From NCBI RefSeq assembly GCF_031769215.1, contig NW_026782366.1:310001-374000 (forward strand): 64,000 nucleotides of DNA, in the 5' to 3' direction. Below, piece after piece: positions 7,991 through 64,000 of the stretch. This DNA is from Ylistrum balloti (lineage: Eukaryota). The notes beneath the pieces were generated by a model, which did not search any database, had not been told where the DNA came from, and saw only the letters and a program-made list of their open reading frames with translations. Within the stretch, counting starts at the first letter, position 1; every line of letters begins with the position of its first letter. The position numbers and the translations under genes were made by a program.

Positions 7991-9756
7991 ATGCTAGATG
8001 TTTGGTTGTTGTTAACTTTGTTGTCATTTGGGAATGTGACATTACTTACTTAGAATGACTAAGCTTTATATGGTAGGTGTCTTTGATGAGGCAGAGGACA
8101 TTTAACCCTCCTGGAACACGTTTACTTTACATCCTCTTGGAGTCTCTGTGTAAATTTTTCTTTTGTTCATATTTTGTGCTCGATTCAACAAGTTTGAATC
8201 AAGATTGTATTGATGTTGATATTTCCATTGTTGTTTTTCTTATCACAGAGAATGCTCTCCAGCTTGCTAAACCTGAAACCCCCATTATGGTTCCTTCCAA
8301 CTGTTTCTCATCTCTCAATGTTGTCCCTATGCTAAATAGCCACTGATATCCCAGAGAGATGATACAATAATGTACTGGTTGATGCCTCAACTGAATAACG
8401 CTACTTTCAAACTATGAGATTCAAGTCCTAGTAAGTTTTCATGTCAAGATTTTGACTTTTTTAAAGCTCCAACAAAGTCCAAATATTTTCTGCCATTCTG
8501 GAGTTGCAGTCTTCCAAAGAAAGTTGAGAGCCTGCATGGTATGGAACACCTACACTGGCTCAGCTTTTACTTACAGCATGTGCTATAGGAGATTATCTCA
8601 GGCGCTTGACAAAAGAAACAACAACGGCTGTGCCTTAGCAATATATCACTATTTATCTATGAAAGTGTGACACAACAATCATTCAATATTCAAATAAATA
8701 TCACTCACAACTCAGCACTTCAATTCTTAAATTCAGCATCAACAGTTGGTAGAAGTTGAGACAGTTCAGATTTCTTGTTATACACCAAAATTTTTGGATT
8801 TTCTTTACACATTTACTACATTTACAATTCATCATTCTTGTATAATTACAGGAAAAAGTGATAACTTACAGGACTAATATCATTAATAAATATTAATCAA
8901 GTTCTTTACTTTCCAATGCAAAAACTGAAATATTTGAGGATTCACTTTTCCTTTTGTCTTTTCAACAAAGAAATTTATCACTTATTTCATGGTGGAATCA
9001 TTCAATTATGGTTTGACTTTATACTACATGAAAACTTATAAATTATATATTTATACAATAAAATTGTTGAAATGAAAACTTTCAATAATTTACTGTTACC
9101 ATACACAGATCTGTAGCATAAACTTACTCTTAAAGCTTATAGTATATAAATCATCTGTCATACAACAAAAAACAAAACAAAAATTACTGAGTACCTATCC
9201 AGAAAACTCCTAATTCAGATGATTTTGCCTGGAATCAACGTGTCTAGACTTTCGAGGGTCCAATGTATATGGTGGTGAATCTTTCTTTTCCATGAATTAT
9301 GAATTTCAAAAAAACACTTTCATCATTTGGTTTGTGAGTAATCTAGAATTGTACAAAATATGTATGACTCTATAAATCATTGATTGAACCATCTTCAAGA
9401 ATATGATTGACCTATACGCAAACATCACAGACATTTCACAGATATTTCACATGATATTAACACTAACATCAATTAAATCAGGCTAGAACTACTGCAGACT
9501 AGAAGAGAATTAAGAGGATGTGTACCTTAAATGGCAGAAAAAATATTAGTAGAGAGTCAAAATATTAACTGAATAAGCAATGTTGAAAAAATCTCAGCAA
9601 ATAATCAAAATATTAACAGATTAATTATATTGTGCATTGGCTATATATATCACAGTCATCTTAAAAACACTTTGCTCATGATAATGAATAGGATTATCTC
9701 CCTTGATCTTGTTTATCTGCTGCCCGAATCATGCACACACAACTTCTAGGAATGGA

Positions 9757-12700: not shown

Positions 12701-15700
12701 CTCAGAATAGCGGTGGTAATGGCAGTTGTTGCATAACGCTGATTAGAATTAAACTTTACCACATATCCCTGTTATAGAAAAGAAACCCACGTCATTCTGT
12801 CTTTTATCTTGTATAAGGATGAGGAGGGGAACTAAATTAAACATATTATTAAATATAGCGTATGTAACTGTTTACAAATAACTGTGAACTCTTGATACAA
12901 TATTCAACTTTGAATTTGTCATACGTCGATGTAACTTGATAAAATCAAACTTGTGCTGAGGATATAAAATGATTCATTGACACTGAAAGCTTGTAACATC
13001 AATACATTATTATCATTTTGATCTTTAAGTCTTAAAAAAATAACTTACCACCTTGTCCATCACTCACATAAATGTATTATGGTAGTTATATCATGTTCTA
13101 CACTGCATGTCTGGGAGATCAATGTAACATTCTCATAGTGTTTGTGACAAATATCAATATAATGTATTACACTGCAGGTCTCGCAGATCAATGTGACATT
13201 CCCATAGTGTTTGTGACAAATATCAATATAATGTATTACACTGCAGGTCTCGCAGATCAATGTGACATTCTCATATTGTTTGTGACAAATATCAATATAA
13301 TGTATTACACAGCAGGTCTCGGAGATCAATGTGACATTCTCATAATGATACCCATGTGTTTGTGACAAATATCAATATCAATAACAGGCTAAACCTTTGA
13401 TCGTAGAATATAGACCTTACCTTGTGTAATCCTGGCTGATGATTACTCTCATGCTTTTCACTGAAATGGGATATAAAGTGTTCTTTCAATCAATTGCAAA
13501 TTCATAGAAAATCAATTTCTCAGAGCAATGTTCCCAGCTGCTATATCAACTTTCACATAAACAACATCAAACTGAATTATTTTAATCCTTAGTTTTGTAA
13601 ATATATCCAGCGGGAGGTGTGAACAGATAATCTAATTTTGTTGACAAGTATTAGTATTCCTTACGCAAATTGATGTAAAAAGTGGAAACAGAAAATATTA
13701 CAGGTTTAAATACTTACGCATAGTTGGGATGAACTGCATGGGCCTGGTCTACACTCATCATGTAGGATTTGGGCATTGACTCTTCAAATGCTGTGCTGCT
13801 CCCTCCAGCACTGAGGCGGCGGAGAACAAGCTCCTGGAGAGTGGATGCTGCACCCTGCGCACTCTGGGACCCCACCTACAGATACAAATTAATAAATTAT
13901 AAATTGACTTGTGTTTACATCTACAGCCACTCTATGGCTATAGCAAAATTGAGAATATCAATGTTTTGCAACTGTGTAATTGGGAATACATGTAACATCC
14001 ATGCACTGAGGCTTCAAATTGACTGTGATATGGGAAATTCAAACTTGGTTCAGAAAATGTGAAATTAACAAAAATTCACACCATAAAACATGTACACATT
14101 GACTTTGGGCCCATCGTAAATAACAAGTCCATTGGTTTGAAGAAATTTGAAATCAAAATATTACATTATTGTATACATTTAAAAAAAACCTGAATATCAA
14201 TTCTGACAGACTATAAGAAAGTGAAAACTGTCATACAGAGCCCCCATCAATCACTTGCAGTGGTGACATGTACAGCTTACCTCTTCGTTGTCAAACAAAC
14301 AGATGAGACGGATGTTTGGGTCTTCACTCAGGCTGTTCCCAATGCATGACTCAATCAAAGCCTACAATAGAGGAAAACAGATGAGCCATATGACAGCTGT
14401 ACATTTACAAAAGTGTATCGCGCTGTAGATTTATTCTTTGTTCTTAAACTTACCCCCCAACCACCCACAATGGAGTAAAACAAATTGTATGTCCTATTAA
14501 CATTCACACCATCAATCATTTAACAAGGTAGAAGTATAATTTACAGAAATTCATGATGAAGTCTCCAGGAAAACATCCTGCTAATCAATGGCTTCATAAC
14601 ATTTTGTTTTATTTATTTGTTTTTTTTTTAGTTGCTCTTGCTTGTTCAAATTTATGGTCAAACCAAATTCGGAGTATGACTTTCATTTCATGAAACTGAC
14701 CTAAATATTTCAATTGCATGAACTTAGCTAATTACTAACCAGATGCCAAATGGGCCCTTTTCTAAAATCATGGCTTGGGGATTTGGTCATTCAGAACTGA
14801 GAAAGTTTTAATACACTTGACCCCTGTGACCCTGAAAGTGGTCAAGGCCATTCTATAGTCCTTCACTAAAGAATGCTCTTTGTCTAAAGTCATGACACTG
14901 GGCCTTCTCTTCATTTAGAAGTTGAATGAAAAGCGAAAAACATTTTACTCCTTGACAAATACAATAATTAATCTAGACTTTTTGTGATTCAGAAAAACCA
15001 CATTTGAAAGCCCTTCATGCCAGCATTCTACTGATGCATTATCTCTGTTGCTTGCATGGCTTACATGGATCCCAAATGAAGAAACTGTTTTCCTACTCTT
15101 TTTTTTATCCATTGCTTCATTCTGGATTCATTTTAATTTCAACTTGTGGAAAACATTACCTCAGTTGCACAATAAGCATTTAGAAGGTTGTCCAGTCGTG
15201 GTGCAAAAATGAACTCCTCTAGAATTCCACCGATGGCCTGTAATATCAAGTCATTGTTAGTATGAGATCATTAATGAACTTAAATAGTTTAAATCTATGT
15301 GTCATTTTTCCCCATCTATATTTATTCTTTGTTGCCCTTGATATCTATGAAGACCACCTTGAAACTATGGAGCTCAGGGAACAATCTGATCATAAATATC
15401 AGAGAAAACCTAATACATGTATACCATCTGGATACAAGGGTAAGTGACAATACTTACAATACTTTGTGAAAGGTTTCTAAAAGTAATGTTTATCACTTAA
15501 ATCTATGACATTCATTAAAGTAGACTTGCTATATACATATTACATAAACTGATTTCATATATAAATGTTTATTTGTAATCAAGGATTAGTTGCTAGATGG
15601 TGTTGTTAACGATGGTGCTGAGATGATCACCACTTCTTTACACAGGCAAAAAAACTTACAGCTGGTTGTGTGTCTGCGAGACAGAGTTCAAAGTCCAACA

Positions 15701-18700
15701 TTTGATCTGGCTGGATATCGAGTTCATCACAAATCAACTTCACTAGTAATGGCTGATGTTTAAGGCACTGTTAAAAATAATGATAAAAACTGGGCACACT
15801 TCTACTTTGTATATTGCCTCAATGTTGATATCACCAACTTGCTACATCTCTACCTTGTGTGTTGTTTCAATGTAGGAAGCACAAACTTGATAATCTTCTA
15901 CAGTGAACGATATTTCAATGTAGATAACACAAACTTGGTATTTGTCTTATTTGATAGAATTCACTTTACAAGTTAAATGGGTGATTACAGGTGTACTTTT
16001 ATCAACAAAGGGAGTTAAGGTAAAGCACACCATTCTTAGGTGTGTAAGAGATACCCCTCTCATCAGTGGACATACAAAAGAATAAATGTAATTATCTGAT
16101 TTGACAAGTAGAGTTTAACACAACAGTATACTATAATCCTGTGGATATATATCATAGCTATTTATGTAGTTACAATATAAACAATTATCAGAAAGCAGTA
16201 GATCTAAGAATTATTTAATGAACTTTCTGGGGAGAGGCACTGTAGGACTTGTTTTGTGAAATCAACTGAATCAACATATCATAAACAAACAAATCTGGTA
16301 TTCATAGAGACAAGAAACCAGAACTTTCGACCTTTGGACATTAAAGAGCAATCCTATGTAAGTAATTTTGGTGAAGAAGCACTGTATCAAATTTGTGTTG
16401 AACAGGCCACCCAAACCAAAAATTGAAACAGAAGTTGGATGAATGGATACAAGTTATTTCGTTTAACACAAATCTGGTAGATCATGTCACACCCAGTCCA
16501 GTTTCTGCTTTTGTACTGTGCTTGACAAATTTAAAAGCTACATTACTCTGCTGATATAAAGTACCTGGTTGTCACTGATTTACATTCTTGCTTCACTTAT
16601 CAAGTATAATAATAAACATTTGAAGGCAGCAATGTATCAAAATGTTTGATTGGTTATGATTTTGAAAGTGACCTTTCAAAATAGTTGGTTTCTCTAGTCA
16701 GGTCCTTCTGTACAAAGAACTGTATTTACCTGGGGAGTGAAGCCTGGAACATTAGTCTCAGAAATCCCAGAATCACCTTGGAGTTCTGCCTGTACAGCTG
16801 TAGCAAGGACAGGACATCTGTAGAACAAAGAACCCAACTTCAGCGAGAGCAAATAAAAAGATATTGATGAACTATCATGACTATGAAAATGGCACTGTCT
16901 ATAGATCCTTTGGTTTTCAAACAGGCTCCAACTCTTTACATCACAGAATTAAATCCAAAATGACACATAAGTTCTCCTTCTCATCCAAAATGACACACAA
17001 TTTCTCCGTCCTATCATTTGGCTGGATAACAAAACTTATTCACGAATATGACATTGTACAGTGCTTATCTTCTATTCGGCTCCAGTGGTGTACAATATTT
17101 GAAAAAGCCCAACCAATTTTTGGTAATAATGCCCAAAATCTCTGACAACCATGTAGAGAGTACTTATCCCATTACTATAAAATCTGTTATCAAAGCGTAT
17201 GTTCCATAACGTTCAGATATTTCAACAGTTGAAATAAAATTTCACATCATTTAAAGCTCTTCTCATTAAATGAAACTCTTTTTAATTAATTAATTGATTT
17301 AAAAGGTTTTATGTCCACTGTCCTAATTCATATTTCTTCCAATTATACCCCGTTATGTACCCCACTCTGATAAAGAACCCTCTGATTCACATACACACAC
17401 ACACACTAAAATGGTGGATATTTGAAGCAGAGAATAAGGTAGTCATGTTGTTCAGGTTTCTAAATACCATACAAAGACAATCAAATTATACACCATAACA
17501 TCGCTTACACATGCGTTTCCTTGTTGGGGCCGAACTTTTCGTTGTGATCTCTCATCAGGTGGATACATATATTGGGCACACGAAGGATTGGACGCTCAAC
17601 ATGTATAAGGCGATGATCAATCTTGTCCTTGTTCTGATGAAAGAAAAAAAAATCTCAGTAAAACCAATCTCTTGGTGTGTCATCAAAGGATAGCTCTTAT
17701 ATTTCTGTCAATGTAACAGAAAATTTGTTAACCCACACCTGGAGTTGTGTTTAAATATCACCAACACAGAAAGATACAGGTAAACTATCATACCCTTGCA
17801 GGCAGTTGGCCAAACACTAGTCATATTTTGGTGAAAGTGTATATTGTCAGAAATAAATGCCAAGTATGATGATATCTGATAAATGCAAATACATTGCAGG
17901 TAATGGAAATCATGTTTATATTTATTTTGCCTGTGCAGTAAATGCCATTTGATATCCTCTAACCAAACAAACTAAATCTCAATATCATCACTCAAGCTAT
18001 GTTATTTAATAAACATACCCTGACAAGCACACGTCCAGCAATAGTTAGGTCTCGGTCAAACCATGTGTGCCAGATACCTCCACCATAACACTCAACACCA
18101 ACCATCTGGTACCCAACCTTGTTCTTTTTAGAATCAGGTTTCACCTGACAAGAAAACAGTTTGGTTTATTACCTTTTTTTTCTTACATAAGTACGTCAGA
18201 GAGTTTAATCAGTTTAATTTAGGAAAAGGTCGATTCTCTGACGAAAAATCCTTGATACATATTCATTATCATGGCATTTTTTTCCTTTTCAAATCTGAAA
18301 ATTAAAAAGTTGATGGACAGTTTGCAAATCTGTGTATTGTAGTTTGTTTGCTATGGAAGACATACAGTACATATTCGAAATAAATACAATCACTGATCTG
18401 TACTTTATACCTTCAGACAAGGACTATCTGTGTGAGCTCCAACTATACTGAAACCATTGCCTGGCTTAAATTTTCCACCGACAGCAAATGCAATGATAGT
18501 GGACTTGTTTCTGGTCAGAAAATACTGCAAGACAAATTTATTTACATGTCACCAACACAATGAACCATCTAAACAATATTAAATACACAATAATATATCT
18601 CATTAACTGCATTATCATTATACTCTACCACATATCATGAAGTGCACTAACTCATACATTTCCATTTGAAGATATGAGATGTAAATGATGTGGATTTTTT

Positions 18701-45909: not shown

Positions 45910-48900
45910 TCATATATCCATGCTATCACCATTTTGTGAGAGTTCATTGCCATTGTGATTCTCTGAAGAGCTTGCAGTGAGCGTGGATGATGTGGTGGAG
46001 AGAGGAGTTGATACAGACACCTCAGATGTTACAACAGACTCTGGTGTTGATGCAATAGTACTACTTGTGGTTGGTCTGGGACTAGTTGTAGCTAAACACA
46101 CACGTGGACGATTGTGAAGATTAGTAAGGTCTACCTTCCCCTGCAAGTGCTGAAGTAACAGTGGTCCATATGCCACCTTCTTTTCTTCTTTGGTGTCATC
46201 TGACCAGGGAGAGGGAGATGATGATGAAGAAGCAGATGACATATTTGAAGAAGACTGTTGTTGGTCAAGATGAATTTTGATACTGAGATCAGAGTCAATT
46301 AAATGTTTTGAAGGCATCAGGTTCTGTAATGAGTCTTGTCCAAAGGACATGGGATGGTCATCGGGCTCTGAACCAGAGAAAATTGACTCTGGAAGTTCCG
46401 GGTTTTTGGACAAAAGATGATGAGCCATTGCATCCCTGGCTTGCAAGGCATCTAGATGAGGTAGCAAGATGTCTTTAGGCAAAAGCTCTGCTTCATCAAG
46501 GTCAAGCTCATCATCCGTCTCCTATAACATACAAAACAAGTCAATTATAATAACCATGATTGAAGATCACAAAGGGGTATAATGTTTTAGTGCAGCTGCC
46601 ACCAACCAGCCATCCACATCATCATTTCTCAGCGACAGTGCATTTTTTCAGTGGACTTATTAAACAAACTTCAAAAGTCAACTTTCAACTCAAAACTTCA
46701 CACACTGCTTTCTTATAAAAACTGTTCTTGCTACTTTTGGACAACCTTTCAAGAGAAAATAAGGTCATCATTATTTCAAACAGAAAAGTAATTTCAAATC
46801 TTACTTGAGTTCTGCTCTATAACTGGAGTTTCCCTTGAAAAATACAAACCAGTCCCTGGACATTGTTGTTAATGTTAAAACAATTTACATTACATGAGAA
46901 CTTAATTTACTTTTCTGTAATGAAAAGATATTAATTCCTTGTTAGGAACTGCTTACCTCAGGTTTGAGAGGAAACCTTGTCTCCATATCCTTGAGTGAGG
47001 AGTGGATTGGACAGCGGGCATTGTCTTCTAGAGTGACCACAGGCTGACCACACCTACCTCCACCAAACTGACAAGGTCGGTACAACACCTGATACTGGTC
47101 AGTCAGAATGTCTACACTGAAGTCAAGTTCTAATAATGGTTTCACATCTCTTTCAAACACAATCAGTATAATTTTTTGGACTGTTCAAATTTCATACATA
47201 TGATGATAAAAAAAGTTGCTTTGCTTCTGTGTTTAGCACCAAAAACACATAATTAATGCATGTACTGTGAAATCAAATGATGAATAATGAAATTCAAACA
47301 CCTATGTAAATTATTAATTGTAGGAATGTAAGGAGAGAGGTCTCAAATCAATTTTTCAATTATGCAAAAAATAAATATGTTATATTAATTTATAAATAAT
47401 GACAAAAGTTCTATTAACTTTCCAAAGTTGAAGGATTTTCAGGAAAACAGATGTTAATAGTATTAAGATGACAGTATGGTCAAAACACAATTTAACAGAA
47501 GTTCTGAATTTACAAGGATACGTTGTGAACAGTACTTCGACAGTGGCAGGGCTCTGTGGGAACACTTATTTCCATCTTCAACATATACACACTTTGGATA
47601 GGATGGCGGTCGGTAATTGGCCCCCTCAGACACAGCGATTCTCCTCTGCTTTGACTGACGATGTAGCAATGCTTCCTGGAAGGGAAGAGGAGATATCCTT
47701 TATGTCCAATTATATATTTCTTGTATCAATTTAACTTTCCTAGGATATCAATCATCAGAGTTTTGTAATATTACTGATAAGAAAACAATGCTGTACCTTT
47801 CCATGCCTTTTGTGGTATCGCTTGAGGGCCTTTAGTTTAGAGTATTTGTCTCTCGTCTCTGGACCTTCTTTGTAAACAGATAAACTTCCTGCAAAATAAA
47901 CAAGAGGCCCAAGGGCCTTAACAATCACCTGAATCACAATGCTCTTCTTGTAGTATGTAAGAGAAGTAGTAAGATAACTTTAATTACATTGTACATGTAA
48001 TACAAATGTAAGCTGTACATTACATTAACTGCCATCCCATGCCAAAGCTTCTACTTTGTTTGAATTTGTTTGAATTAATAGAAATTACAATCAGACATGA
48101 AATTTTCCTATACAAACTTTATAGTAAATTTTATCCCCTTCCCTGGGGAAACATGAGACCCTGGGGTCATCAAATTTACAATTTTGTAGAGAATCATAAG
48201 GTCTTTCCATCCATGAAAAATATTAAATTCTACCATACTTGGGTATTTTTGATTTTTGAAGTTTCAATCAATCTGATTCTTTTTAGGCCGTAACTCTATC
48301 CAATTTGGGGTGGGGACCATTGTATTTACAGTTGTGGTGGCCATGGTAGCAATGACCAAAGCAAGTTGATTTATTCCAAATTTCAAATAAACTGAAGAGT
48401 TGTTTAATTTTGTGATGGTCTCAGTTCGAGAGAATTCAAAGGTATTAAACTTAGTGCATTTCTATCAAATGTATCAATGTATACAAACATACTACATACT
48501 TGTAAGAATCTAATTCACTGTAAAAATGTTTGCTGCATTTCTACTTTTAGCAAAATATAATCCCTGGTGAATATTACCCATTATACAATAATGCTACTTG
48601 TACTATTTAAAGGAGGATGGCATAAAAAAGTGATAGTGAATAGTACTTGAAACTTCCAAATGCCATGTAAAGCTCCAGGCACACATGTTTTGGAACATGA
48701 CCTGCTTCTTTCAAGTGGAAGTTGGTACTCTTGGGGAAATGTAATGCAAATCATCATGAATACTCATTGATCATGTTAACTCTTGGGCGGTCATATGGTC
48801 ACTATGTTCCATTTTGAACAGTTTAGAGTGGACATGGCAGCATTGGAACAGAATGCAATAACGTTCTTTCTGGATTGCTCTTTCATGGTTTTTCATTCTA

Positions 48901-51900
48901 GATCATCTCAAAATGTTGATATGTGACTGGGGATTTCACAAATTCTGCTTGTGAATGAAAATTTACTTCAGAAAATCTAATCACATTCATTTGTCATTTA
49001 CTACATTAAATCTTTTAATCTTTAACCATTTGTGCTTGGGAAGACAATACGGTCTTTTACAAATACCATCTGTACTTGATAGACAATAATCTCACAAAGT
49101 CCTTGACGTCAAGGGTCATCCATAATGACCTTTTGCTATCCTATAAAGGGGATAATATAAAGGGTTTTTTTCATTCTTTAAACAAAGCACAGTTCCACTT
49201 GGTTATATGTTAAGTGTATATTACAACTTGGCGCAGTTTCATCTGAAAAAATTTGAAGTGTACATGATATAATTCTTACCGAGAGATTCTTTCTCCTGTT
49301 TGTGAGTGTGCAAGTATTTGCGTCGTTTTTCCTTCATGATGTGTTGAAGTCTTTTGAACTGGTCAATGTAGAGTGACTGTAGACGAATGAGTTTATCCCG
49401 CATTACCAGGGCCACCTCCTCTGCTGTGTACACACCAGCATGTCTTAAAACAAACATGAAAGTAAAAATATTTAAATGTTTTAAATTCTTTTTTAAAATG
49501 ACTACCAGAAAGTGAATATTAATAATGCACATCTTGACAATAAATAAACCAATGCGTTTTTGCTTGTACATTTCAATATCAAGGTTTACTTAAATCAGCA
49601 AGAATCGTTCCACTATAATCTTGCCAGTTAAAACATAATTTTGTTAAAAAACACACTTTGATTAAAAATTAAAATTTAAAATTCTGCATCATTACTTTGA
49701 CAAATCAGATGACCCTTATCAAGTGCTGATTGTTACGATTCATGAGTAAATAGAGTTATGAAATGGTGGTCTTACTTGAGTAGGTCCTCCTGATCACTGT
49801 CTATACTCTCTGGGTCACTGTCGCCATCCCCTCTCCAAGCCTGGTCCACCAAAGGAGGCTCAACATCAGAGTCCTCAGAACTAGCATACTCTGCACACAA
49901 ATAGTAATTTACTTTAAAGGTTAATAGCAATAGACAGAAAATATTCCAGCATACTCATTAGTAAAGCATAGTAATAAGAGTAAGTCATAGTAATACTGCA
50001 ATACACCATCTACCACAGAGTAATAATAACCAGGGAGAGAATATTGAATAGTAAAAAAAATAACTAACAAAAGCCACAGAATTTCAGCTTTTGCTTTTTA
50101 ATATAAATGCTGCCTCAGCAGACAGTTAAACATTTTACTATTTGCCTCAGCCTGACGTGCGGTGTCCACATTAAATTCAGGAGCAAATCAAATGGCTTCA
50201 TCACTGGCATAAATGCTTTGAATACATTACAGTAATCTTATTATCTAATGTTATTATGGGGATTTTGGCAACTACTACAGCATGATTTCTCTTAGTTACC
50301 TAACTTACTTGTTGTTTGGGGTTTTTGTATTCTTTAACTGAAATTCAGTAATAAAACTACATAAAACTGCTTTTTATGATGGGTTATTTTAACCATCATA
50401 TACCTCATATGTATGCATAACCAACTGGATGCTGCTTTCATACATAAAATAATCTAATCTATAGTTGTATAATTTCACTGGGTTCACATTACATATCTTG
50501 GATAGTGTTAGTTTATATACATGTCTATACATTGTTACCAATAAAGAGATAATTTGTTTCAACATTAATAACTGAGATAATGATGAAATGTAAAACTCTA
50601 TCAAAGTTATAGATCAACTTAATTTTTTTCATGATGTCAAGAATCTACCATGGAGAATTCTATGACTATAATCACAATAATTAAGTAATGACTAATGTGT
50701 TGAAAACTGTGTCAAATTTATCGGACAGGTAAACTTCTAACAAATCATGAACCATTACCAATCTATTCATGAAATCCTTCCAGCCCTAAATGCAATCAGG
50801 CTTGGGTTTCAAATACTATGTTTTCTACTTTCAAATTGCTCAAGCAAAATCTTTAAGTGATATTACATGATACAAGTTTGCCTCAGCCTGACGTGCGGTG
50901 TCCACATTTAATTCAGGAGCAAATCAAATGGCATCATCACAGGCAATAACAGATTTCTATAAATAACCTCAGCTTAAACAAGAAATTCCAGGTGGCACCC
51001 ACCATTGTATGATCCTCACTAGTTCTATTTATTTACAATGATATACCTTATTTGTTGTAGCCACAGTACTTTGTATTTTTGGTACACTTAGGTTTGTGTA
51101 TGATAACATAATGAACATCCCTGACATAACTTCAGAACAAATAAGATCATTTAAGACAATAGTATCAGTGAAAATGTTGAACGCTCCTTGACAATGATTT
51201 TTTTGGACATAAATTTCAACATTAGACATCCTGGATTGTGTAAATTTATACTCAAGTATAAAGTTCTGCACATGTCTGTACATTGTTACCAATGAAGAGA
51301 TAATAGCATACATTTTTGCGAGATTTTGATTCCTAGTACAAATATTAACGATATCTGAATTTGTTTCATCATTAATAACTGAGATAATAAAGAAATGTAA
51401 AACTCTATCATAGTTATAGATCAACTTAAAATTTTTCATGATGTCAAGAATCTACCTTTGAGAATTCTATAACTATAATCACAATAATTAAGTAGAGAAT
51501 AATGTGTTGAAAACTGCGTCAAATTTATCGGACAGGTTGAAAACTGCGTCAAATTTATCAGACAGGTAAACTTCTAACAAGATTACGGCAAATTATGAAC
51601 CATTATGTACCTTTGAAGAATTCTATAACTATAATCACAATAATTAGTTACAAGATTACGGCAAATTATGAACCATTACCTAGTTATTCATGAAATCCTC
51701 CCAGCCCTAAATGCAATCAGGATTGGGTTTCAAATACTATGTTTTGTACTTTCAAATTGCTCAAGCAAAATCTCAAAGTGATATTACATGATACAAGTTT
51801 GCCTCAGCCTGACGTGCGGTGTCCACATTTAATTCAGGAGCAAATCAAATGGCATCATCACAGGCAATAACAGATTTCTATAAATAACCTCAGCTTAAAC

Positions 51901-54408
51901 AAGAAATTCCAGGTGGCACCCACCATTGTATGATTCTCACTAGTTCATTTCTCTTATTCACCCTGATATAACTTGTTTGTTGTAGCCACAGTACTTGGTA
52001 TTTTTGGTACACTTAGGTTTGTGTATGATAACATAATGAACATCCCTGACATAACTTCAGAACAAATAAGATCATTTAAGACAGTAGTATCAGTGAAATT
52101 GTTGAATGCTCCATGAAAATTGTGCATTATGTTTAATCTAATGAAAAGATTTGCTACCATGTTTTACCACATTCTTCTGAACTTTCACAGTTAGATAGAA
52201 AAATTAATTCATCACTTTAATTACCTAAGGGCTATTATTGTCACAATTACTGTTTAATGATAACACAGATCAACATTTGAGAATTCTACAGTTGTTAAAC
52301 AGATTACCAACTAAAATATGAATGTTCTGTTGTGATTATCCCTTTCTGCTATTTGCAGATATTACAATGTTTCTGACAGACAATTAATTATATATCTAAA
52401 TATTCCCAATAATATGAGAAACGAAAGTATTGAAATCTGTGTCAATGATATCTGATAGGCAAGCTTTGAACCAGATGATAGCAAAATGCAATGCCCAAAA
52501 TGTTATCAGGTTTGGATTTCAAATACAATATTCAAAATGTTCATGCATGAAAGATTCCAAAGTAATTTTACACAACACAAGTACACAAGTTTGCCCAGTC
52601 TGATGTGCTGTGTCCACATTCTATTCAGGAGAAAATCTAATGGGTTTTACACAGACATACACATAATATCAATGCAATGTTTTTTTTAACTGAAAATACT
52701 GAACAATAATGAAAATATCATCACGAACTTAGTAATACAGATGATTAATAATGACATTTAATTAGAACTAAATCTGAAAAATCAGAATTCCTGCCAGCTC
52801 TTCAGAACAATATTCCAGTGTATTTTCCCCCCTTATATTTCTGCAACATGTCCTCTTCCCTGATGGAAAAGAATCAGACTATATGAAAAATGTAACCAAG
52901 TCAGCTGGAGCCAAGAAGACAGGTCAAATGAATGAGTGGTATTCAGTAATTTCTGAAGTTTGGTGTTAAACCATCTCAGCACTTGTCTGATAACTCTGTG
53001 ACCCATATTTTAAGGATTCCAGGTTACTATGCTAATAAAGAATCAGCTGTCAAAATACCCAAATGCTATGCTTTCAGAAGAATATGTGTACATTTTAATT
53101 AATAGGAAACATTTTTTGAAATAAAATGAAAAAAATACGAGTATTGGATGCAAGATTTGCTTCAGACTGACGTGCAGGTATCCACATATTGTTCAGGTGC
53201 AAATCTTATCTTTCATCATCAGCAAATCTTCAAATTCGAACAAGATACAATTGCATTATCTATAAATATTGATAGTAACTTCATTTTACAAACAGTATGT
53301 GACCTAATACTTACCTAGGACTTTGCTGGCCACACTGTCAGAATAACCCTTGATTCTTCGGCTGTCCTGCACACCTTTAAAGTGATCCAGGTCCTCTAGC
53401 AGACTTTCAGCGGTCTCTTTGGGTTGTGCCTTTCTAGTGGATCTCTGCCGAAGCAATACTGCTCTTCGTGAATGTTCTGCACAGTACCTGTAACCATCCA
53501 TTTTAGACCTTATTTATTAAGTCGTGTTAAATGAACATTCTACATGATAAACAAAATTCTGGAATGAACTCTTTCATGCTATATGATTCAATATTGCAAC
53601 GAGTTGTAATTATTCTAGAGGATATTTGCATGTTGAAATACAAACACACACACATTATCAAATTGGACAATACAAAACTTAACATCAACATATACCTATA
53701 AACATATAGAAACTTCATTATCAAAATTCATTATCAGACTTTCTTTTTCAACTTCCCATGAAATCATACAGGCACACTACACTGTCCCATATTTACAAGT
53801 GTTGATTTAACCTACCACCAACTGTACATTTATAAAACAAATATTAATTGTGGCTGTTGCAGGTTTGTTGTATATTTGCATCATAATTTTCCCCCCTATA
53901 TGAACAGTCACCCCACTGATTTATAATGGAATAATCTGATACATTACTAACACTACTAAAGCTAGTGCTAGGTATAAGAATAAATGTATACAGCAGTAGT
54001 GTTGCCCTGCTAAACGTAACAAATATTTAAACACATAGGTTAGAACTGACCAGTATGCCAGCATGTATAACTAACCTATCAAAGCTAAACTACTATTGCT
54101 TTGAAAATAATCTCTACAAATGTATCTTAAAATAATCCTCACAAGTCATCTGAATATTTCCAAGAGCCTTACCCATCTTTCCTATCAGCTTTTGGTGCTG
54201 CATTCAGACACCGTTTTCCATTTTTGCTTGAAATAAAAGCACACTGTTTGAATGGTGCATTTTTGTCTTCAAGAATGTGTCTGATGCAATAATCATAGCT
54301 ATCAATTCTGTTGTGCATACAAGTCCGATGAGTGTAATTACAGAAAACTCCTTCTACTGGCTGACGAAGGCGTCGCTGGCTTGGAAGTTGACTTTTGGAT
54401 TTCAGCAT
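45910..54408 (-). CDS. KANSL2: KAT8 regulatory NSL complex subunit 2, 8 coding exons
   Basis: Exons 54408-54173, 53487-53315, 49890-49776, 49443-49280, 47888-47797, 47675-47522, 47111-46957 and 46521-45910; phases join. Motifs [88 protein letters not shown]. Confidence 0.96.
47112..47521 (-). other. Putative U12-type (minor spliceosome) GT-AG intron of KANSL2
   Basis: Donor GTATCCTTG at 47521. ACTTGAC branch-like motif at 47128-47122, about 11 nt before the acceptor. No polypyrimidine tract. Confidence 0.75.
47898..48627. mobile_element. HINE-like element in a KANSL2 intron
   Basis: Begins AAACAAGAGGCCCAAGGGCCTTAAC..TCACCTGA, has CCCTGGGG core repeats and ends AGGAGGATGGCATAAAAAA. Confidence 0.7.
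50143..50209 (-). ncRNA. Box C/D snoRNA copy A (predicted guide for LSU rRNA A at the yeast Am876-equivalent site)
   Basis: Minus strand TGCC-A-GTGATGA...GATTTGCTC-CTGA (D')...ATGTGGA (C'-like)...GCACGTCAGG-CTGA-GGCA; canonical 4-bp terminal stem. Confidence 0.85.
50879..50945 (-). ncRNA. Box C/D snoRNA copy B
   Basis: TGCC-T-GTGATGA...CTGA...GCACGTCAGG-CTGA-GGCA; C box at 50940-50934, D box at 50886-50883. Confidence 0.85.
51800..51866 (-). ncRNA. Box C/D snoRNA copy C (identical to B)
   Basis: Same sequence as copy B; C box at 51861-51855, D box at 51807-51804. Confidence 0.85.
52592..52658 (-). pseudogene. Decayed snoRNA copy D
   Basis: Homologous spacing retained (GATTTTCTC-CTGA, ATGTGGACAC, GCACATCAGA), but box D is CTGG, box C is lost and the guide is mutated. 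Confidence 0.7.
53152..53230 (-). ncRNA. Box C/D snoRNA copy E (divergent, 10-bp terminal stem, two rRNA-complementary guides)
   Basis: AAGATTTGCT-G-ATGATGA...GATTTGCAC-CTGA...ATGTGGA...TGCACGTCAGT-CTGA-AGCAAATCTT. Confidence 0.9.
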
Positions 54409-55605: not shown

Positions 55606-56018
55606 TATTGCTAAAATAATGATGGAAAACGATAGCAAATGACTATTTGCATGTTTCAATATTGAAAACAAACAAAAATAGCAACAAAATTTGCTCAAAT
55701 ATACGTACATTAGTAACCACTTCTAGGCCTAGTCGACCACGCACATGTCACCAGTTTTCGTATAAATACACCCGCATTTCTAAATATCAGTATCAATTAT
55801 TGTATTTATACAGAAAGAATTCTGTTTTATAAAACAACAGCCTTAGAAAATTATGTTTTGAAGAAATATTCCACTAAATTCTGATATCTATACAGAGCTG
55901 AAATAAAGTTCATTAACAAAAATTATCTTAACAAATCATGTGCTTGTAAAATCTCCGCCCGAGCTATAATTTGAAAGTTGAGCATGCGCTCTTGCGGTAT
56001 TTCCTTGGTGCTGGGTAA
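55606..56018. promoter_or_regulatory. Probable bidirectional promoter between KANSL2 and cyclin T
   Basis: Minus-strand donor AG|GTAAGT at about 55605 suggests a KANSL2 non-coding first exon; cyclin T ATG at 56019. CpG-richer patch with CCGCCC and an NRF1-like GCGCATGCTC (minus strand) near 55980. Confidence 0.5.
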
Positions 56019-59000
56019 ATGGCGGGGGAGCGATGGATTTTCACCAATTCGCAACTTTTGGATACCCCCAGCCGAAAATGTGGGATAGATAACGACAAAG
56101 AACTGGCATACAGACAACAAGCTGCCAACCTGATCCAGGAAATGGGACAGAGCCTCATAGTGTATCCTGTTCAGGAGAAAGTTGGCAGTGAAGTGGTGTG
56201 GTCGAATCGTCACCGGTTTGGTCGCACCATTTTCTATTCTGTTGTGCTATGTTGTCTAAAATCGTTCTTAAACACATTTAACGAGTTCAAAGAAAGCCAA
56301 TTGAAAACCATTCATTAATTTCATGCAAATTAAAGAGCTAAAACACGAAATAGTGTGAATTATCATACATTTCTTTGATTTCCCCAATGCGTAATATAGT
56401 AGCCTAACTGATGACCTCATTTTCGTCAATGGATACCGGCGCATTGATTGTAAAATTTCCCATAGTAAAAGACCACGTGCTTCTCCGCTAATTATTACTA
56501 TAGCAGTTGACTGTGTTATCCAATATTGACATATTTTGGTGTATTTGTATAGGAATGTAAAATCCGCTCGCACATCAATAGTAGAAATCTGCATATTTTT
56601 TATATAAACTGAAATTCATGCACTTTGTTAAATTGATGCATTAATGTTCGGCCAAGATTGTTTAACTAGGGTCCACCCAGTAAGTAATTATGTGAATCTC
56701 GAAAAAGAACAGTTTTTTTCCTGTTTCACAATTTTCTGAACAAGTTGTCTTCTAGATCTGAAGCACAGCAACATGCCACATTTAATATGACAAACAGTAT
56801 ATTAAAACCTTAACCAGTACCAGAACCCAACTATGTATCAACACTGCCATCGTGTACATGCATCGGTTCTACATGTTCCACTCCTTCTCCAGGTTCCATC
56901 GCAATGTAAGTAACAAGAAAGTTACAGACCTCTGAGAAGTAATATAACCTTGTTAATATACATTATCTGATGTGTTTGATTTGGGAATATTAAAAAAATG
57001 TGGTTCAGAAATTGATTCTTCAAATCTTCACATGGCAAAGGGTATCCATCTTTCCAAAGATGCCTGTCAGTTTACATAATGTATCTGAATGTAAGGTTTC
57101 AAAATCCTGACATGACTTCTAGATTTCATATGGAGACTTAGAATCCACTTAGAATTGTTGAAATCTTTGCCAAATGGTTGATACTTTAAATAGGAAATTG
57201 CACAACTTGGTGAATTGGTTGAATCTCTTCTACTTTTAGATAAATGTAGTAAAATACCAGTTCCAAAATGATAAAAGGTTAACATTAATTAGAACCACCA
57301 AATATGATTATATTGATATGATTATCAGATTTTTTCCTCCATTATTTCAGTCCATGGCACCTGTTTGTCTGTTTCTTGCCGCAAAAGTAGAAGAGCAACC
57401 TAGAAAACTGGAACATGTTCTCAAACTAGTCCACAAGTCACTACACAAAGATGGCCCTTTTGATGCCAAAAGTGATGTAAGTAAACTGAAAAAGCTAAAC
57501 AGTGACCATTTTGGCACTGTCCATCCAATTTAATCATAATGGTGCTATGGTCAACCTTTTTCATCATTTGTTTCTTTGTCATTTTAAGAGACTTCATCAC
57601 AGTAAATCTAAAGAAATTGAATGCAGTTTACATCCTCAATTATGTCTTCATATATCTGTACTCATAATCAAAACTGAGTATCCAATTTGACTACTCAGAT
57701 TGTTTCCAAAACACTTACATAGCACTCATAATATATTGCTCATGACAAATTTCAGAGGCATTTATAGTTGATAGAAGTTATTTGCATCAACAGCAGTGAT
57801 CACAGCTATGTTGAACACTTTTTGCTTTGAAATGTAATTTTGTTTATTGAATATAGTTTATAATGGCAGTTTGCTTAAACTTAATTAAGTACAGGTTTGT
57901 CATTTTGCCGTCAATATTTTCCTTTTTGGTCTCCTTTACAACACAGACTTGCTTATCAGCTTTGAGTTAGCAGAGGATGGGGATGTTTCCTCATTCCTAC
58001 AGATATGGATTCACTATTTGAGATATTTCATGGTTTATACTGACTTCCTGTCCTAATCATTGGATTATTCTATGACTATTTTGGCGATTTCTGACTTTGT
58101 AGTGACTGTTTTTGTTTGCCACCACTTTCCACAGGACTCTTTATCGTTCATAGTACTTTAACAAATTCTATAATGCATGCATTGACAGTTCCTTCTTGAG
58201 CATTGTTGAGAAAGAAAAGTCGTCCTGTTATATCTTTACTTGACAAATGGGATTGCCATATATTGTTTAATCAAATATCAGTTTTTCAGGTTATTTCTTA
58301 GCAAATTTTGACCAAATTTTCCCATAAGGACCAGTGCTACATCTTTGAAAACAAATCACTCCACCGGGATGTTACTTTAATGATTTTAGGATGACAATTG
58401 TATTGAAGTTTTTTCTACTCTTTAACTTGTGTTTCAATGCAAAATTTTGATAATTAACTTTTTTTCTCTCTCTTAGTTATTTAAAGTTTCTGGCAAGTTT
58501 TGAACTGTGTGTTTTTCATCAGACTTTGAACATATATGTTTCCCAGGCTGTTATTATTTAACAATGATTCACATTCTTAATTGAGGATCTTTTCGAGGAA
58601 CTTTTCAGCTTGTTGATCATGATGCTACAGTTATGGAGTTGATTTAAATTTCTGACATATTTTAGGTTTTTTATTTGTTGTACCTCACATTCTATAGGAG
58701 ACTATATATGTGTTATACAAGCATTCTCTAGTTACAAATGTGTAAGGTGTTTTATAGCTGTTATACATTATGTTTGTTTGCTGTTAAAGTTTGACAAGTA
58801 AGAAATGAAAAAATTATGTTGATGTTAGATACTACTTTGCTTATGTACAGATCATATATGTATGTATTTCCAGGACTACCTTCAACAAGCACATGAACTG
58901 GTTGTGAATGAAAACATCCTTCTACAGACTTTGGGTAAGGACTTACTGGCTAAGTTATTGAGAATATTTTTTATGTACCCAGGAGGAAATGGCAGGGTAT

Positions 59001-62000
59001 AAGTTTGTACAATATGATCATGATCCTTTCTCCACCAAATCTAATTTCATTCTTTTTCATATGAATGTTTGCTATCAATAGAAAAAACATACAAAATTGT
59101 TTGTCACAATACGCAGTGTAAAAACTTCAATGTATTACTGTGTACATTTTCACTTAATTTAGCCTGTTTATCAATCTGACAAAAGCCACAGAGTTTATAA
59201 CCTGCAATAGTACCTCTGACTGAAACCTTGAGTCCTGGGATGGGATAGCTGTTTCACTGGAATAATGCTGAGTGAAAAGCCAAATTTGTTTAATAGAATG
59301 ATTTTTACTTTCCAGGGTTTGACCTGACTGTCGACCATCCCCACACCCATGTGGTCAAAACATGTCAGCTGGTTAGAGGTGAGTTTTGTGCTGAGTAGAC
59401 AACAGTAATAATGATAAAGTGTTGTCAACACACCTAATATGTACTTCTGTGTTTGAGTGTCATTTGTTTGTCATGCTTTTTTTTTTAATTTGATACTTTT
59501 AATATACAAAAAGATGCTACTCTTCTCGGCCTATGGTTTTTACTGTAACTGAGATTTTTACTGTAATTGATGAAATTATATTTTGATTGTTAACTCATCA
59601 AGAGTTGAAATTCTTAGCTTTATCGCAAAGTAACCTAGAAATACTAAATTGCACTTCCTTCAGAAAACATCCCTGAAATTTCAGAAGCTGAAAGTAGTCA
59701 TATTCAGATCATTGAGATTATTTTCATTAAAATGTTCTGATCAATTAAAAAAGACTGTATTCTTTGGATGTGTCATATTATTAGTCCTGTGTGCTAGTGA
59801 TGACCAGAGATACTGTCTGAATCATTAAGTCTACATGTGTGGCAACACTCCTTCTGTCCTTGATTTGATACTCTGAGCAATAGATATTGTAAGGGAAGTT
59901 TTCCTCCCAAACAAGGTTAATAAATATATTAATATTTCACATCATGCAATCTTTATGTATATCATATATTTTAACGCTATTCCTCTTTTCTAAATTCTAA
60001 ATTCTGACCAAAAGGGCTGTCTGAAATTTCTCCATTTCTCGAATTAGACTGAAAAAATCCAGCTTTTCCTCCTTGTGTAGTATTCTCCTAATTCTTGATC
60101 AGTTCATGCTATTGTGAGGGCAGAGTTGCATATTTAAGTGGGTTCTTGTGTATCACAGTACTCCATATATGATAATTGTCTGTTAGAATGATTAAGTGGC
60201 AAACATGTAATGTTCTGTTAACTTCTAATACTTAGCTTTGTCAGGTGGGAGGTCTTTGTGAAATGCTATAACAGAATTATTAGCACTTTGCTGGGGAAGT
60301 TTGGAGATGGTATGGAAATTTCTGCATTACAAAGTACATTTGTAAGAGCTCCCATAACATTATGAAGCTACATCTTCATTGCTTTGGATTGTTTTTCAGG
60401 CCAAGGTCACTGGCTAGAAATAGAAAATTAGTTTTTTCCTAATAATAACTATCCTTTGCCAAACCATCATACACTTAATTCAAAGTGCTTGCTTGGTGTT
60501 GCTTTTCAGGTTCAAAGCTCAGACAAGCTTGATTTTAAAAATATAGAAAAATCTCCAAAAATAACAAAAAAAGAATAAGTCGGTTAGGGAAAGAACCTGT
60601 CCACTATTGTGATGTTTCTTATTTGCACACAATTTTATGTGTAACATTTTCTTAACTTAAGAACAGTAATTAACTTAAGAACAGTAATTAACAGGTGACA
60701 TATTTTATACCATTACAGGTGTAGTTTAGAATGCCATATGGAATGCTGCTTTACATGGATTAAAAATCAAGAGTGGATGTATTTGTTAATTTATGTTGAT
60801 GTTTGAAATAAATGTTTGCGTTGTGATACCTAGCATTCACAGATATGTAACATGATATCTCCATTCAAATCTCTCTTGTGTGATGGATGAGCTCAGACAT
60901 TATTTAAATTTAATGATTTTTGACTTCCCTGACTCATTTATTCTTAATTTGTTATAAACTGTTTATATAACAAAAATTTGTTTTACAAAGTTCAAGTCTT
61001 CAAAATAACATTTGAGTATGTTACTTTTCAAATAGATGAGATATCTGTAGTCAGAAGTCATTAATCAGTAAATAGTTTGGGTGTAGGTTGGTCAACATGG
61101 TAATATGCAGGAATTAAGACTGGTGAGTTTAGAGTTTATTGAGAATTTTCTGATTATTAATGTCAGCAATTCCTATTCAAAGAAAAGGTTTCAAATGCAA
61201 ATAGACACTTGGTATCATGGTTTGCAGGATTTGGTAATTTTATGAAAACACTGGTAAACAAAATCAAAATAGTTCCCAATCAAGAAAATGTAAACCTTAC
61301 CTGGAGAAGATTTCAAGTGCATTTTAAATTTAGGGGTGTTGTTGCACAGGCTAATGGTGGCATATGTTTTCTTTCTCTCTGCCCCCACACTTGTGTTGCC
61401 TGTGACCTTGACCTTGTGCCCATCACCGCTGTGTGTCGACTCCGATGTGCCTATCACAGCCACCAAGGATCTCGCCCAGACGTCCTACTTCCTGGCAACA
61501 AACAGGTGCTCACATCAATGTCACTCACCTCTCTCCAGCAATATTTATATAACGGGTCTAAAACATTTTCTCTATGTAGCCAATATCGGCATTTTCACAT
61601 GTTCCTTCCAATGAGCAAAATGTTGGCAGTTCTGTTTATTGAAGAGAAAAACTATTAGAAGAAAATGTCAGATTTGGCTATGTAGTCTGAAAGTTTGAGT
61701 CCTGTAATTATTAAAGAAGGCAAAAAAAAAGTGAGAGAAACAAAATCATGGTTCATTTAATTTCTTGTACCAAGATGAATTTGTATTCTGTAAATTGTGA
61801 GTACTTCATTAAAGAAAAGTTGAGCTATGATTTACTTTTGAGAACAAGGTGGTGACTCATGTCCATTGTAGTGGACAATATCTTATTTGGAACTTTACCT
61901 CATCACCAAATTTATTTGAAAAAATATCATGATCATCTGTCTCATCATCTGAAAAGCACTCTAAATGTCTAAAATGAAAATGAACTCTTGCAAAGTATGC

Positions 62001-63344
62001 AGGCACTCAGACTTGAATGCATGTTGCATATTCAGAGAGATTTATTTCAAGATAAGATATTTTTTGTCTGAGATTGTGATATATTGATATTTATATACAT
62101 CAGTTAAATTGGATTTATCATAAAATGTTGAATTTTAAATATGAAGTGTTTAACTTTATAATATAAATGGAGAGGGAACATATTTGATGCATGCTTATAA
62201 TTGTTTGTATTTCAGATTCAATGCACGTATGACTGTGGCAAGCATATTGATGATTTCCTGTCTTTGAAGTATTCCCTCAATATTTCAATACTTAAATGTT
62301 AATCTTTCCATAAAGCTTCTTATTAAATTTGTGATAAATGTAATTGCAGCCTTCATTTGACTACCATGTGTCTGCAATACAAGCCAACAGTTGTAGCCTG
62401 TGCCTGTGTACATCTAGCCTGCAAGTGGTCCAGCTGGGAGGTAAAAACCTTCTCATCAGTTTAGAATATTATCTTGTAACCTTAAATGCAGCTATTCTAC
62501 AATAAGACAATATTGTCTGTCTGTCTGTCCATTTGTTTCTTTGTTACTGCACAATATCTCGTTCTGTTGGACCAGTTGCTCTTTAAACTCCTTCCTGTGC
62601 TTGCTTGCAATTGCTTTTAAGGTCAGGAAATCAAAGATCAAGGTAACTGTTACTGTCCGTACAGAATCCTTTACTGCACAATATCTCTCATTTCTGTTTA
62701 GCTGGTTTCACTCAGATTTAATCTGTAGCTTTTTCATAGGAAGAGCTTGCTTCAAGTTGCTTTTCATGTTAAGGGATCAAAGGTCAAGGTCACTATTACT
62801 ATAAATAACTGAAAACATGAAATAGATAATAGGTCAATTTAAGATATAGTGAAATTTGTAGTTAACTGATCCCCTATGGAAATGAGGCACCTATTTATGC
62901 AAACATGTTATTATGAACCAGAATGATTTGGGGGAGGCAGGGGGGAATGTGATTACTCTGATACCAATGTTGACATTCTGGTTCTTAACTGCTAAATAAT
63001 GTTGTCTCTGGATAATGTATCAAAAGATGATTTGATGATGCAGTAGGATATCAAAGATAATAAGAATCTCAACACACAATTAATTACTACTTTGTTTGCA
63101 GTTTTTGATGTCAATATGCAATATGTCATATATATTTTGTATTCAGCACTTCTGAATGGTTATTGTTTTATTGAGGTAACCTTCCAGCACATGCTGCACC
63201 ATTTTGAAATCACTATTAGTTTCATTTTGAAAAGAAACAATTTTAATTTTTGGATTTCTTTTGATTTAAAGATTCCTCGATCGAGCGAAGGCAAAGATTG
63301 GCACTGGTACCTGGACAAAAATGTAACGGTCAAATTACTCGAAG
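56019..63344 (+). CDS. CCNT: Cyclin T (P-TEFb subunit), first 8 exons; gene continues beyond the window
   Basis: Exons 56019-56161, 56824-56905, 57351-57476, 58874-58934, 59316-59378, 61460-61505, 62350-62440 and 63272-63344; phases join. Motifs [103 protein letters not shown]. Confidence 0.97.
56162..56823 (+). other. U12-type (minor spliceosome) intron 1 of cyclin T
   Basis: Donor GTATCCTG at 56162. Branch site CCTTAAC at 56808-56814, 10 nt before the CAG acceptor. No polypyrimidine tract. Confidence 0.88.
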
Positions 63345-64000
63345 GTAAAGAATTTAATCACAAATTTCTAGATTTTAGACACTTTTTTTACTTCAAGCAA
63401 ACCCACAGAATTTTATTTCCAAGTTAACACCAATCACATATACAATGCATTTTAGTGCTGTCCCAACCACCCACAAAGAAAAAAATTCATCTTGAAAAAT
63501 ACATTTTAAACTTTTCTTCAAGTAGATGCAATTGAGCTGAAAATTAATGAGGATGTTAAGGAACAGACACCAACAACAAGATTATTTTTTGAGAACCTAG
63601 TCAAAAAGTTCAATATGAAGACCTTTTTGTATCATGATTATGCAAATTTTTGTAACTGTTTTGATAATTTGATAACTTCTCCTACTGCTATTGTTGGTGT
63701 TATGTCATATATAGGTGTTTATAGTCCATGGGCCTCTTGCTTATTTTATGGTGTCACAAAAACTTTCATAAACTTGAACTTCTATATTCCTTATGAACTA
63801 TTCACAGTGATATATTGGTACAAGCTTATGCTTTCCATGCATTTGTATCCCACCATCATCAGATGGTTGTCTGTTCAAATAACAATTTGTCAGTTGTCAT
63901 AATGTCTTTATCCATTGTTAAAACAATCCTTGTTATTGCTTTTTCTTCGGAAGCACTGTATGGACATTTCTTTATATAGATATCTCTTAGATTTTGTATG

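Follow-up and report, generated by a model that had tools for sequence, protein, structure and literature searches.

One intron of the KANSL2 gene of the scallop Ylistrum balloti carries five homologous units of about 70 nucleotides (nt), four of which have the complete anatomy of small nucleolar RNAs (snoRNAs) of the box C/D class. The intron lies in the stretch of DNA analysed here (the window), which covers 64,000 nt of the RefSeq assembly GCF_031769215.1 (contig NW_026782366.1, positions 310,001 to 374,000 of the forward strand) and has no N; positions below are those of the window unless another locus is named. Judging from sequence comparison, we think it highly probable that these units are genes for a box C/D snoRNA family that is released from the KANSL2 pre-mRNA intron and guides 2'-O-methylation of large-subunit (LSU) ribosomal RNA (rRNA) at the Am876-type site known from yeast.

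Five snoRNA units in one KANSL2 intron

The five units are found on the minus strand, from 53228 to 50141, and have GCACGTCAG-N-CTGA in common. Using the pattern GCACGTCAGNCTGA with up to two mismatches, we found five matches in the window, all of them on the minus strand (50147 to 53175); shuffled versions of the window contain 0.45 matches on average, and none of 100 shuffles reached five. All five units are between the splice sites at 53314 and 49891 and are sense to KANSL2. The intron borders were read from the window sequence (CTAG followed by GTAAGT at 53315/53314, and TGTGCAG followed by AG at 49891/49890), and together with the pattern search they bear out the sequence-only reading of this DNA, which had placed five homologous units, sense to the host, in one intron.

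According to the alignment of the five units, copies 1, 3, 4 and 5 are intact, each with box C ((R)UGAUGA), box D' (CUGA), a degenerate box C' (UGUGGA) and box D (CUGA). Exactly 3 nt separate their terminal stem of 4–8 bp from the GA of box C, and its other strand starts directly after box D, a spacing that places it in kink-turn register, so the earlier description of four units with canonical boxes and such stems holds. The intact copies keep the terminal stem in the predicted single-strand fold, and this fold is no more stable than those of shuffled sequences; C/D snoRNAs are not expected to beat shuffles in this respect.

Copy 2 has GUGUAAAA (GTGTAAAA in DNA) in place of box C and CUGG in place of box D, and its minimum free energy fold is without the terminal stem. 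It shares 75% identity with the intact units, and its flanks share 74–83%; since its identity is no higher than that of its flanks, copy 2 is a pseudogene, and its drift shows how fast neutral sequence changes at this locus. Copies 3 and 4 are the two units of a tandem duplication of about 921 bp with flanks that are 93–96% identical, and the likeness of copy 5 to these two copies is limited to the 69-nt snoRNA body (50141-50209).

Two further observations concern individual copies. An independent DNA run covers the region, and one of its contigs joins 50739 to 51650, skipping 910 bp (one duplication unit, with copy 4); this reflects either a copy-number polymorphism or a repeat that was collapsed in short-read assembly. 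The 3' end of copy 1 (CUGA followed by AGCAAAUC, 53165-53154) looks like the rRNA target stretch CUGA-CGU-GCAAAUC itself, and its 5' stem GAUUUGC has the same letters as the core of the D' element described below. An internal duplication, an alternative conformer and coincidence could each account for this likeness.

Conservation and amplification of the family in scallops

We compared the KANSL2 loci of nine molluscs (Ylistrum, Mizuhopecten, Pecten, Argopecten, Pinctada, Ostrea, Mytilus, Solemya and Haliotis) and counted snoRNA copies in them by the pattern of guide plus box D. Mizuhopecten yessoensis has nine copies, Pecten maximus and Argopecten irradians have eight each, and Ylistrum balloti has four in addition to the pseudocopy. 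In the alignment of the 29 intact copies from these four scallop genera, box D', box D and the 9-nt guide GCACGUCAG do not vary at all, there is very little change in box C and the inner stem, and the loops and flanks are variable. The box C variants are UGACGA (My2), UGAAGA (Ai5 and Ai6) and UGAUGU (Ai8). Box C' is degenerate throughout (UGUGGA, UGUUGA or GGUUGA) with an invariant G..GA. The inner four pairs of the terminal stem are 96–100% paired, and three compensatory changes are seen across the helix (two from CG to UA and one from UA to AU).

Across the four genera, the copies that come first after exon B are orthologues of one another, and a 670-nt alignment around them is conserved only across the snoRNA body; the intron around these orthologues cannot be aligned between the genera. 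Invariant boxes and guides within unalignable intron flanks indicate that the copies are under strong purifying selection and that the family is real and selectively maintained. A covariance model built from the 29 copies (R1) scores all of them at 72–101 bits and the pseudocopy at 65 bits, and it has no match in the KANSL2 loci of Pinctada, Ostrea, Mytilus, Solemya and Haliotis.

These data also bear on whether the units could be inert repeats (an intronic satellite, a snoRNA-derived retroposon or pseudogenes) that resemble C/D snoRNAs by descent or chance only. They are indeed repeated in tandem, with units whose length is particular to each lineage, the window contains one clearly decayed copy, and no known family is matched above threshold. 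However, when genera are compared with each other, or copy 5 with copies 3 and 4, the likeness goes no further than the snoRNA body, boxes and guide stay constant amid variable loops and flanks, the stem carries compensatory changes, and the copy that lost its boxes (copy 2) has drifted at the rate of its flanks. We consider inert repeats very improbable, and we rejected an origin of the units as repeats or transposable elements.

In the tree of the copies, the first copies (type A) form one clade across the genera with support of 93/98, and the remaining copies (type B) group by species. This indicates that the two paralogues predate the four genera and that type B was amplified separately in each lineage. 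The ancestor of the four genera would thus already have had types A and B in this intron, and tandem duplication of type B in each lineage would have led to the present four to nine copies per gene. A probable effect of this amplification is more snoRNA per host transcript.

The repeat units differ in length, from about 290 nt in Mizuhopecten to 480–590 nt in Argopecten, 920 nt in Ylistrum and 1150 nt in Pecten. The arrays differ in location, too. Every copy of Ylistrum and Mizuhopecten is in the intron between exons B and C, which holds three copies in Pecten and two in Argopecten; the other five copies of Pecten and six of Argopecten are in a later intron, before exon E and just ahead of the second zinc-finger exon (10974-15790 of the Pecten KANSL2 locus and 6848-9613 of the Argopecten KANSL2 locus). 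This later intron is only 100–200 nt long and empty in Ylistrum and Mizuhopecten. Within the second array of Argopecten, copies Ai5–Ai8 (locus positions 7944-8618 and 9527-9613) have decayed D' elements with D guide and box D intact, and they may be on the way to becoming pseudogenes.

A stretch GTGTAAAATAATAATG...GAACCAATTRACA is seen about 10–60 nt downstream of the type B copies in Mizuhopecten and Pecten, and in weaker form in Argopecten and after Ylistrum copy 2. Its presence in more than one genus suggests that homology, or a processing signal, reaches past the 3' stem.

The D guide and its predicted rRNA target

The 9 nt before box D (GCACGUCAG) are complementary to LSU CUGACGUGC, with 9 pairs in most copies and 10 in copy 1. 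The target sequence was taken from the consensus of the Rfam LSU_rRNA_eukarya family, in which CUGACGUGCAAAUCG is written in capitals, and this consensus supports the earlier claim that the guide is complementary to a conserved LSU segment. Counting five nucleotides from box D leads to the A of CUGACGUGC in 29 out of 29 copies. In the Rfam consensus this A is the 3' nucleotide of the helix that closes an 8-nt loop (CGUGCAAA). The predicted energy of the guide duplex is -17.8 to -19.1 kcal/mol.

In a metagenome scan, the LSU stretch was found in more than 120 contigs, one of which was identified by Rfam as eukaryotic LSU rRNA. A 15-mer scan of viral contigs gave 48 matches, which we dismissed as chance, none of them having the adjoining conserved LSU motif.

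Yeast 25S-Am876 is guided by snR72 (PMC8053091), and the plant snoRNA Z122 has the same guide, in agreement with the sequence-only reading, which had derived this site from the rule of five nucleotides upstream of box D. Neurospora CD5 and Arabidopsis snoR72Y are listed as snR72 homologues and none is listed for human (PMC2780460), which fits the earlier statement that no equivalent human modification is known. A Drosophila RiboMeth-seq table likewise lists no site in the interval bounded by the counterparts of yeast A817 and G908 (PMC11014333). The terms searched turned up no mention of the site in a zebrafish RiboMeth-seq paper, a review of 2'-O-methylation diversity and an Arabidopsis review. 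Based on the guide and its register, the target nucleotide is confidently predicted to be the equivalent of Am876.

In the mechanism that we propose, each RNA would fold into a short terminal stem and the C/D kink-turn only, and would assemble with Snu13, Nop56, Nop58 and fibrillarin. The D guide would pair with CUGACGUGC, and fibrillarin would methylate the 2'-hydroxyl of the A opposite the fifth guide position (the A of CUGAC). The element before box D' would pair with GCAAAUC, thereby helping to open the hairpin and stabilising the short guide duplex.

A conserved element before box D'

The element before box D' has the conserved core GAUUUGC (GAUUUGCAC in the type A copies of three genera), which is nearly invariant across the genera. 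This core is complementary to (GU)GCAAAUC, i.e. the loop's second half together with the beginning of its 3' strand, a stretch that abuts and slightly overlaps the site of the D guide. The element forms 7–9 contiguous pairs with the adjoining rRNA (predicted duplexes of -10 to -14 kcal/mol); among shuffles of the D' guide, only 1.2% reach seven contiguous pairs in a 33-nt rRNA window.

Extra base-pairing beside the target is known for yeast and human snoRNAs, where it raises methylation by as much as five-fold, frequently shares 1–2 nt with the guide site, and is typical of the shortest guides (PMC3116282). The scallop element resembles the cases of van Nues et al. 2011 (PMC3116282) in that a conserved non-guide element pairs beside the target, accompanies a short guide, and has an rRNA site that overlaps that of the D guide by 1–2 nt (by 5 nt in type A, as is also the case for HBII-316). 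It differs from plain extra pairing in that it occupies the canonical position of a D' guide. By analogy with these systems, accessory ('extra') base-pairing is the most likely role of the element.

A different role for this element would be that of a second methylation guide, in type A at least, acting in separate binding events on the first A of GUGCAAAUC, 6 nt downstream of the first target (about A882 in yeast), as given by counting five nucleotides from box D'. Nine contiguous Watson-Crick pairs (predicted duplex of -14.3 kcal/mol) abut box D' in the type A copies of Ylistrum, Pecten and Mizuhopecten (which has two such copies), box D' does not vary, and box C' has retained its GA. The 5-nt overlap in type A means that the D and D' sites could not be fully paired simultaneously. 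On the other hand, no methylation was found at that position in the yeast (PMC8053091) or Drosophila (PMC11014333) material consulted, most type B copies are mismatched at positions 1–2 beside box D' and form only seven pairs, some Argopecten copies have lost the element and kept the D guide, and yeast snR72 is listed with a conserved C'/D' motif and an inactive adjacent guide (PMC3116282). We therefore regard a second guide as possible and rather unlikely.

Another idea that we hold only tentatively is that the scallop RNA is a 'split-guide' version of snR72/Z122, in which the long unbroken antisense element of the plant RNA is shared out between the D guide (for CUGACGUGC) and the D' element (for GCAAAUC), so that one snoRNP (small nucleolar ribonucleoprotein) would clamp both halves of the hairpin loop. 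The D' half of type A would then be a 9-bp guide that possibly methylates 6 nt downstream, and an Am876-type site would be present in a bilaterian.

The two antisense elements also suit a role in which the RNAs bind the pre-rRNA hairpin mainly as a folding or timing chaperone, or act on another RNA, with little or no methylation. The D guide is short, the two elements span both halves of one hairpin and would hold it open, and flies and humans manage without this methylation. Against this stand the invariant 9-mer, in the exact register that places the known yeast and plant methylation site at position 5, and the boxes for fibrillarin placement, which are intact in 29 copies. We judge a mainly chaperone-like function improbable, and guided methylation of the Am876-type site is preferred.

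Points against a methylation guide, and processing of the arrays

Several observations weigh against our interpretation of the units as a family of functional methylation guides. With 9 bp in most copies and 10 bp in copy 1, the guide duplex is near the lower limit of the lengths usual for box C/D snoRNAs (about 10 nt or more), and the target was read from the Rfam consensus. At the gathering score, Rfam has no match in the window or in five related loci (those of the three other scallops, Mytilus and Haliotis). In Argopecten, the D' element has decayed or box C is weakened in several copies. Part of the D' core could pair with the 3' strand of the snoRNA itself, as it does in copy 5's centroid fold; such intramolecular pairing is disfavoured, since the core is unchanged in Ai1 and My2, where that strand has changed, i.e. 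the two do not covary. Lastly, no copy is located about 70–80 nt from the 3' splice site, the last copies being about 250–1000 nt upstream of the next exon. Assembly of vertebrate intronic C/D snoRNPs is favoured at about 70–80 nt from this site.

For the release of individual snoRNAs from such an intron, either the spacers would be cut endonucleolytically, or short unannotated exons would separate the copies. A candidate exon of 27 nt, preceded by ...catttAG, starting with GGCTGG and followed by GTAATGg, is seen on the minus strand at 51706-51680 and, in duplicate, at 50785-50759. It lies about 90 nt downstream of copies 3 and 4 and would give them a canonical distance between snoRNA and 3' splice site. 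A similar pair (CAG...GAG followed by GTAAAC) is found about 120 nt downstream of most type B copies of Mizuhopecten. We list a mini-exon between copies as a candidate, and as a lead from sequence inspection.

Comparison with known snoRNAs

The sequence-only reading had named Rfam models of snR72 or snoR72Y as a check. No family was reported at the gathering score, and a search of the window to an E-value of 10 has no snR72 or snoR72Y model among its matches; the best sub-threshold match does carry the same guide. A permissive Rfam search returned sub-threshold C/D families only, and the best match of type A is plant snoZ122, at 32.4 bits in the window and 29.5 bits in Mizuhopecten (gathering score 38). 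The alignment with Z122 is carried by box C, guide, box D and stem, and the posterior probability of the interior is low.

Plant snoZ122 (RF00343) and scallop type A agree letter for letter in box C, in the guide GCACGUCAGU and in box D. Z122 is longer than the scallop RNA (89 positions) and has one continuous guide of 13–14 nt (AUUUGCACGUCAGU), whereas the scallop RNA has a D guide of 9–10 nt and the complement to GCAAAU(C) sits before box D' instead. The likeness of the scallop guide to Z122 may have arisen by convergence.

The snoRNAs snR72, CD5 and snoR72Y are of the same class as the scallop RNA, with the same predicted target nucleotide and the guide upstream of box D (PMC8053091, PMC2780460, PMC3116282), and the C'/D' motif of snR72 is likewise conserved, with no methylation target known for it (PMC3116282). 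The genes are organised differently: snR72 is part of a polycistron that is transcribed independently (snR72-78) and CD5 is a lone gene in an intron, whereas the scallop copies form multi-copy intronic arrays in a protein-coding gene. Sequence similarity of snR72, CD5 and snoR72Y with the scallop RNA is seen only in boxes and guide. The scallop RNA is thus filed as working like snR72/Z122, and not as a demonstrated member of that family. As far as the cited literature goes, an animal lineage appears to be new for the Am876-type target.

The presence of several snoRNAs in one intron, stressed earlier as a departure from a rule of one per intron, is confirmed as a layout, but the weight laid on that rule was overstated. 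Passages in PMC2780460 (citing Liang 2002 and Huang 2005) and PMC8351944 describe clusters in rice and Drosophila in which at least two snoRNA genes, often isoforms, share one intron and are sense to the host, as in the scallops. What distinguishes the scallop array from these is its occurrence in Mollusca, a copy number that ranges from four to nine between genera, and, in two of the genera, its extension into a second KANSL2 intron.

The orthologous human gene, KANSL2, hosts SNORA2A (PMC6466398), as had been stated, together with SNORA2B, SNORA2C and SNORA34. These are H/ACA snoRNAs that guide pseudouridylation and occur one per intron, whereas the scallop gene carries a C/D array. The proposal that KANSL2 is a conserved snoRNA host locus with different cargo did not hold up: the loci of Pinctada, Ostrea, Mytilus, Solemya and Haliotis are without the family, and an Rfam scan of the Mytilus and Haliotis loci found no known snoRNA. 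This pattern points to the hosting in scallops as a pectinid event rather than an inherited role of the host, and the use of the same host in human and scallop looks coincidental.

The host gene and its neighbourhood

The minus-strand exons of the host encode two zf-C3Hc3H domains (Pfam), and the gene was named KANSL2 by an exhaustive HMMER search together with cluster names. The locus retrieved for the Ylistrum balloti protein shows no difference from the window along its entire length. A word-based protein search with the 65-aa exon adjoining the intron found no match, and single-exon searches of ESM Atlas and PDB were uninformative for the identity of the host. The intron is flanked by exon B (...SDSVASKVL) and exon C (EYASSEDSD...), and by exon mapping both have orthologous counterparts in the KANSL2 loci of the eight other molluscs. 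Table 1 lists the features of the locus.

Table 1. Features of the KANSL2 locus and of the snoRNA units in the window
Feature	Position	Strand	Remarks
KANSL2 coding part in window	45910..54408	minus	Open reading frames; zf-C3Hc3H twice (Pfam); named KANSL2 relatives
KANSL2 recognisable exons	about 54408-54172, 53501-53315, 49890-49775, 49406-49242	minus	
KANSL2 recognisable exons (continued)	about 47900-47790, 47669-47466, 47160-46945, 46482-45913	minus	
Host intron of KANSL2	49891..53314	minus	GT-AG, 3424 nt, between exons B and C; borders read directly
Copy 1 (type A), intact box C/D snoRNA	53154..53228	minus	Covariance model R1 80.8 bits; snoZ122 32.4 bits
Copy 1 terminal stem, 8 bp	53228-53221 with 53161-53154	minus	
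Copy 1 box C	53219-53213	minus	
Copy 1 D' antisense element	53212-53197	minus	Core GATTTGCAC directly before box D'
Copy 1 box D'	53196-53193	minus	
Copy 1 box C'	53186-53181	minus	
Copy 1 D guide	53180-53166	minus	
Copy 1 box D	53165-53162	minus	
Copy 2, decayed pseudocopy	52588..52660	minus	Box C lost, box D CTGG, guide G>A
Copy 3 (type B), intact box C/D snoRNA	51798..51867	minus	Box D 51807-51804; covariance model R1 88.4 bits
Copy 4 (type B), same sequence as copy 3	50877..50946	minus	Covariance model R1 88.4 bits
Copy 5 (type B), intact box C/D snoRNA	50141..50210	minus	Covariance model R1 86.8 bits; about 250 nt upstream of the 3' splice site

A cyclin T-like gene (Cyclin_N and CycT2-like_C domains) is located at 55900-63500 on the plus strand, head-to-head with KANSL2, and a cyclin T-like neighbour of KANSL2 was called in all four scallop loci. 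Human KANSL2 presumably also adjoins CCNT1, in which case the pair of KANSL2 and cyclin T would be an old microsynteny.

Implications

The layout of the intronic array is itself not new, and we consider the finding moderately interesting, mainly for what appears to be an Am876-type guide in an animal and for the bipartite arrangement of its putative antisense elements. The family predicts a 2'-O-methylated A at CUGACGUGC of mollusc 28S rRNA, a site known from fungi and plants. The Drosophila map does not contain it and no guide for it is listed for human, so the scallop family bears on whether the modification is ancestral and was lost repeatedly, or was re-invented. If the split-guide arrangement were true, an Am876-type modification would exist in a bilaterian lineage, in contrast to flies and humans, which are without it; it would either have been kept since the ancestor of eukaryotes and lost several times elsewhere, or have been re-invented, and there could be a second methylation site that has not been reported for yeast or fly.

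The D' element would be a natural candidate for accessory base-pairing, which has so far been shown experimentally only in yeast. The four genera, with four to nine copies in two introns and two old paralogues, form a natural series for the birth, amplification and processing of intronic snoRNA arrays, and the same series bears on whether copy number may compensate for a modestly expressed host gene.

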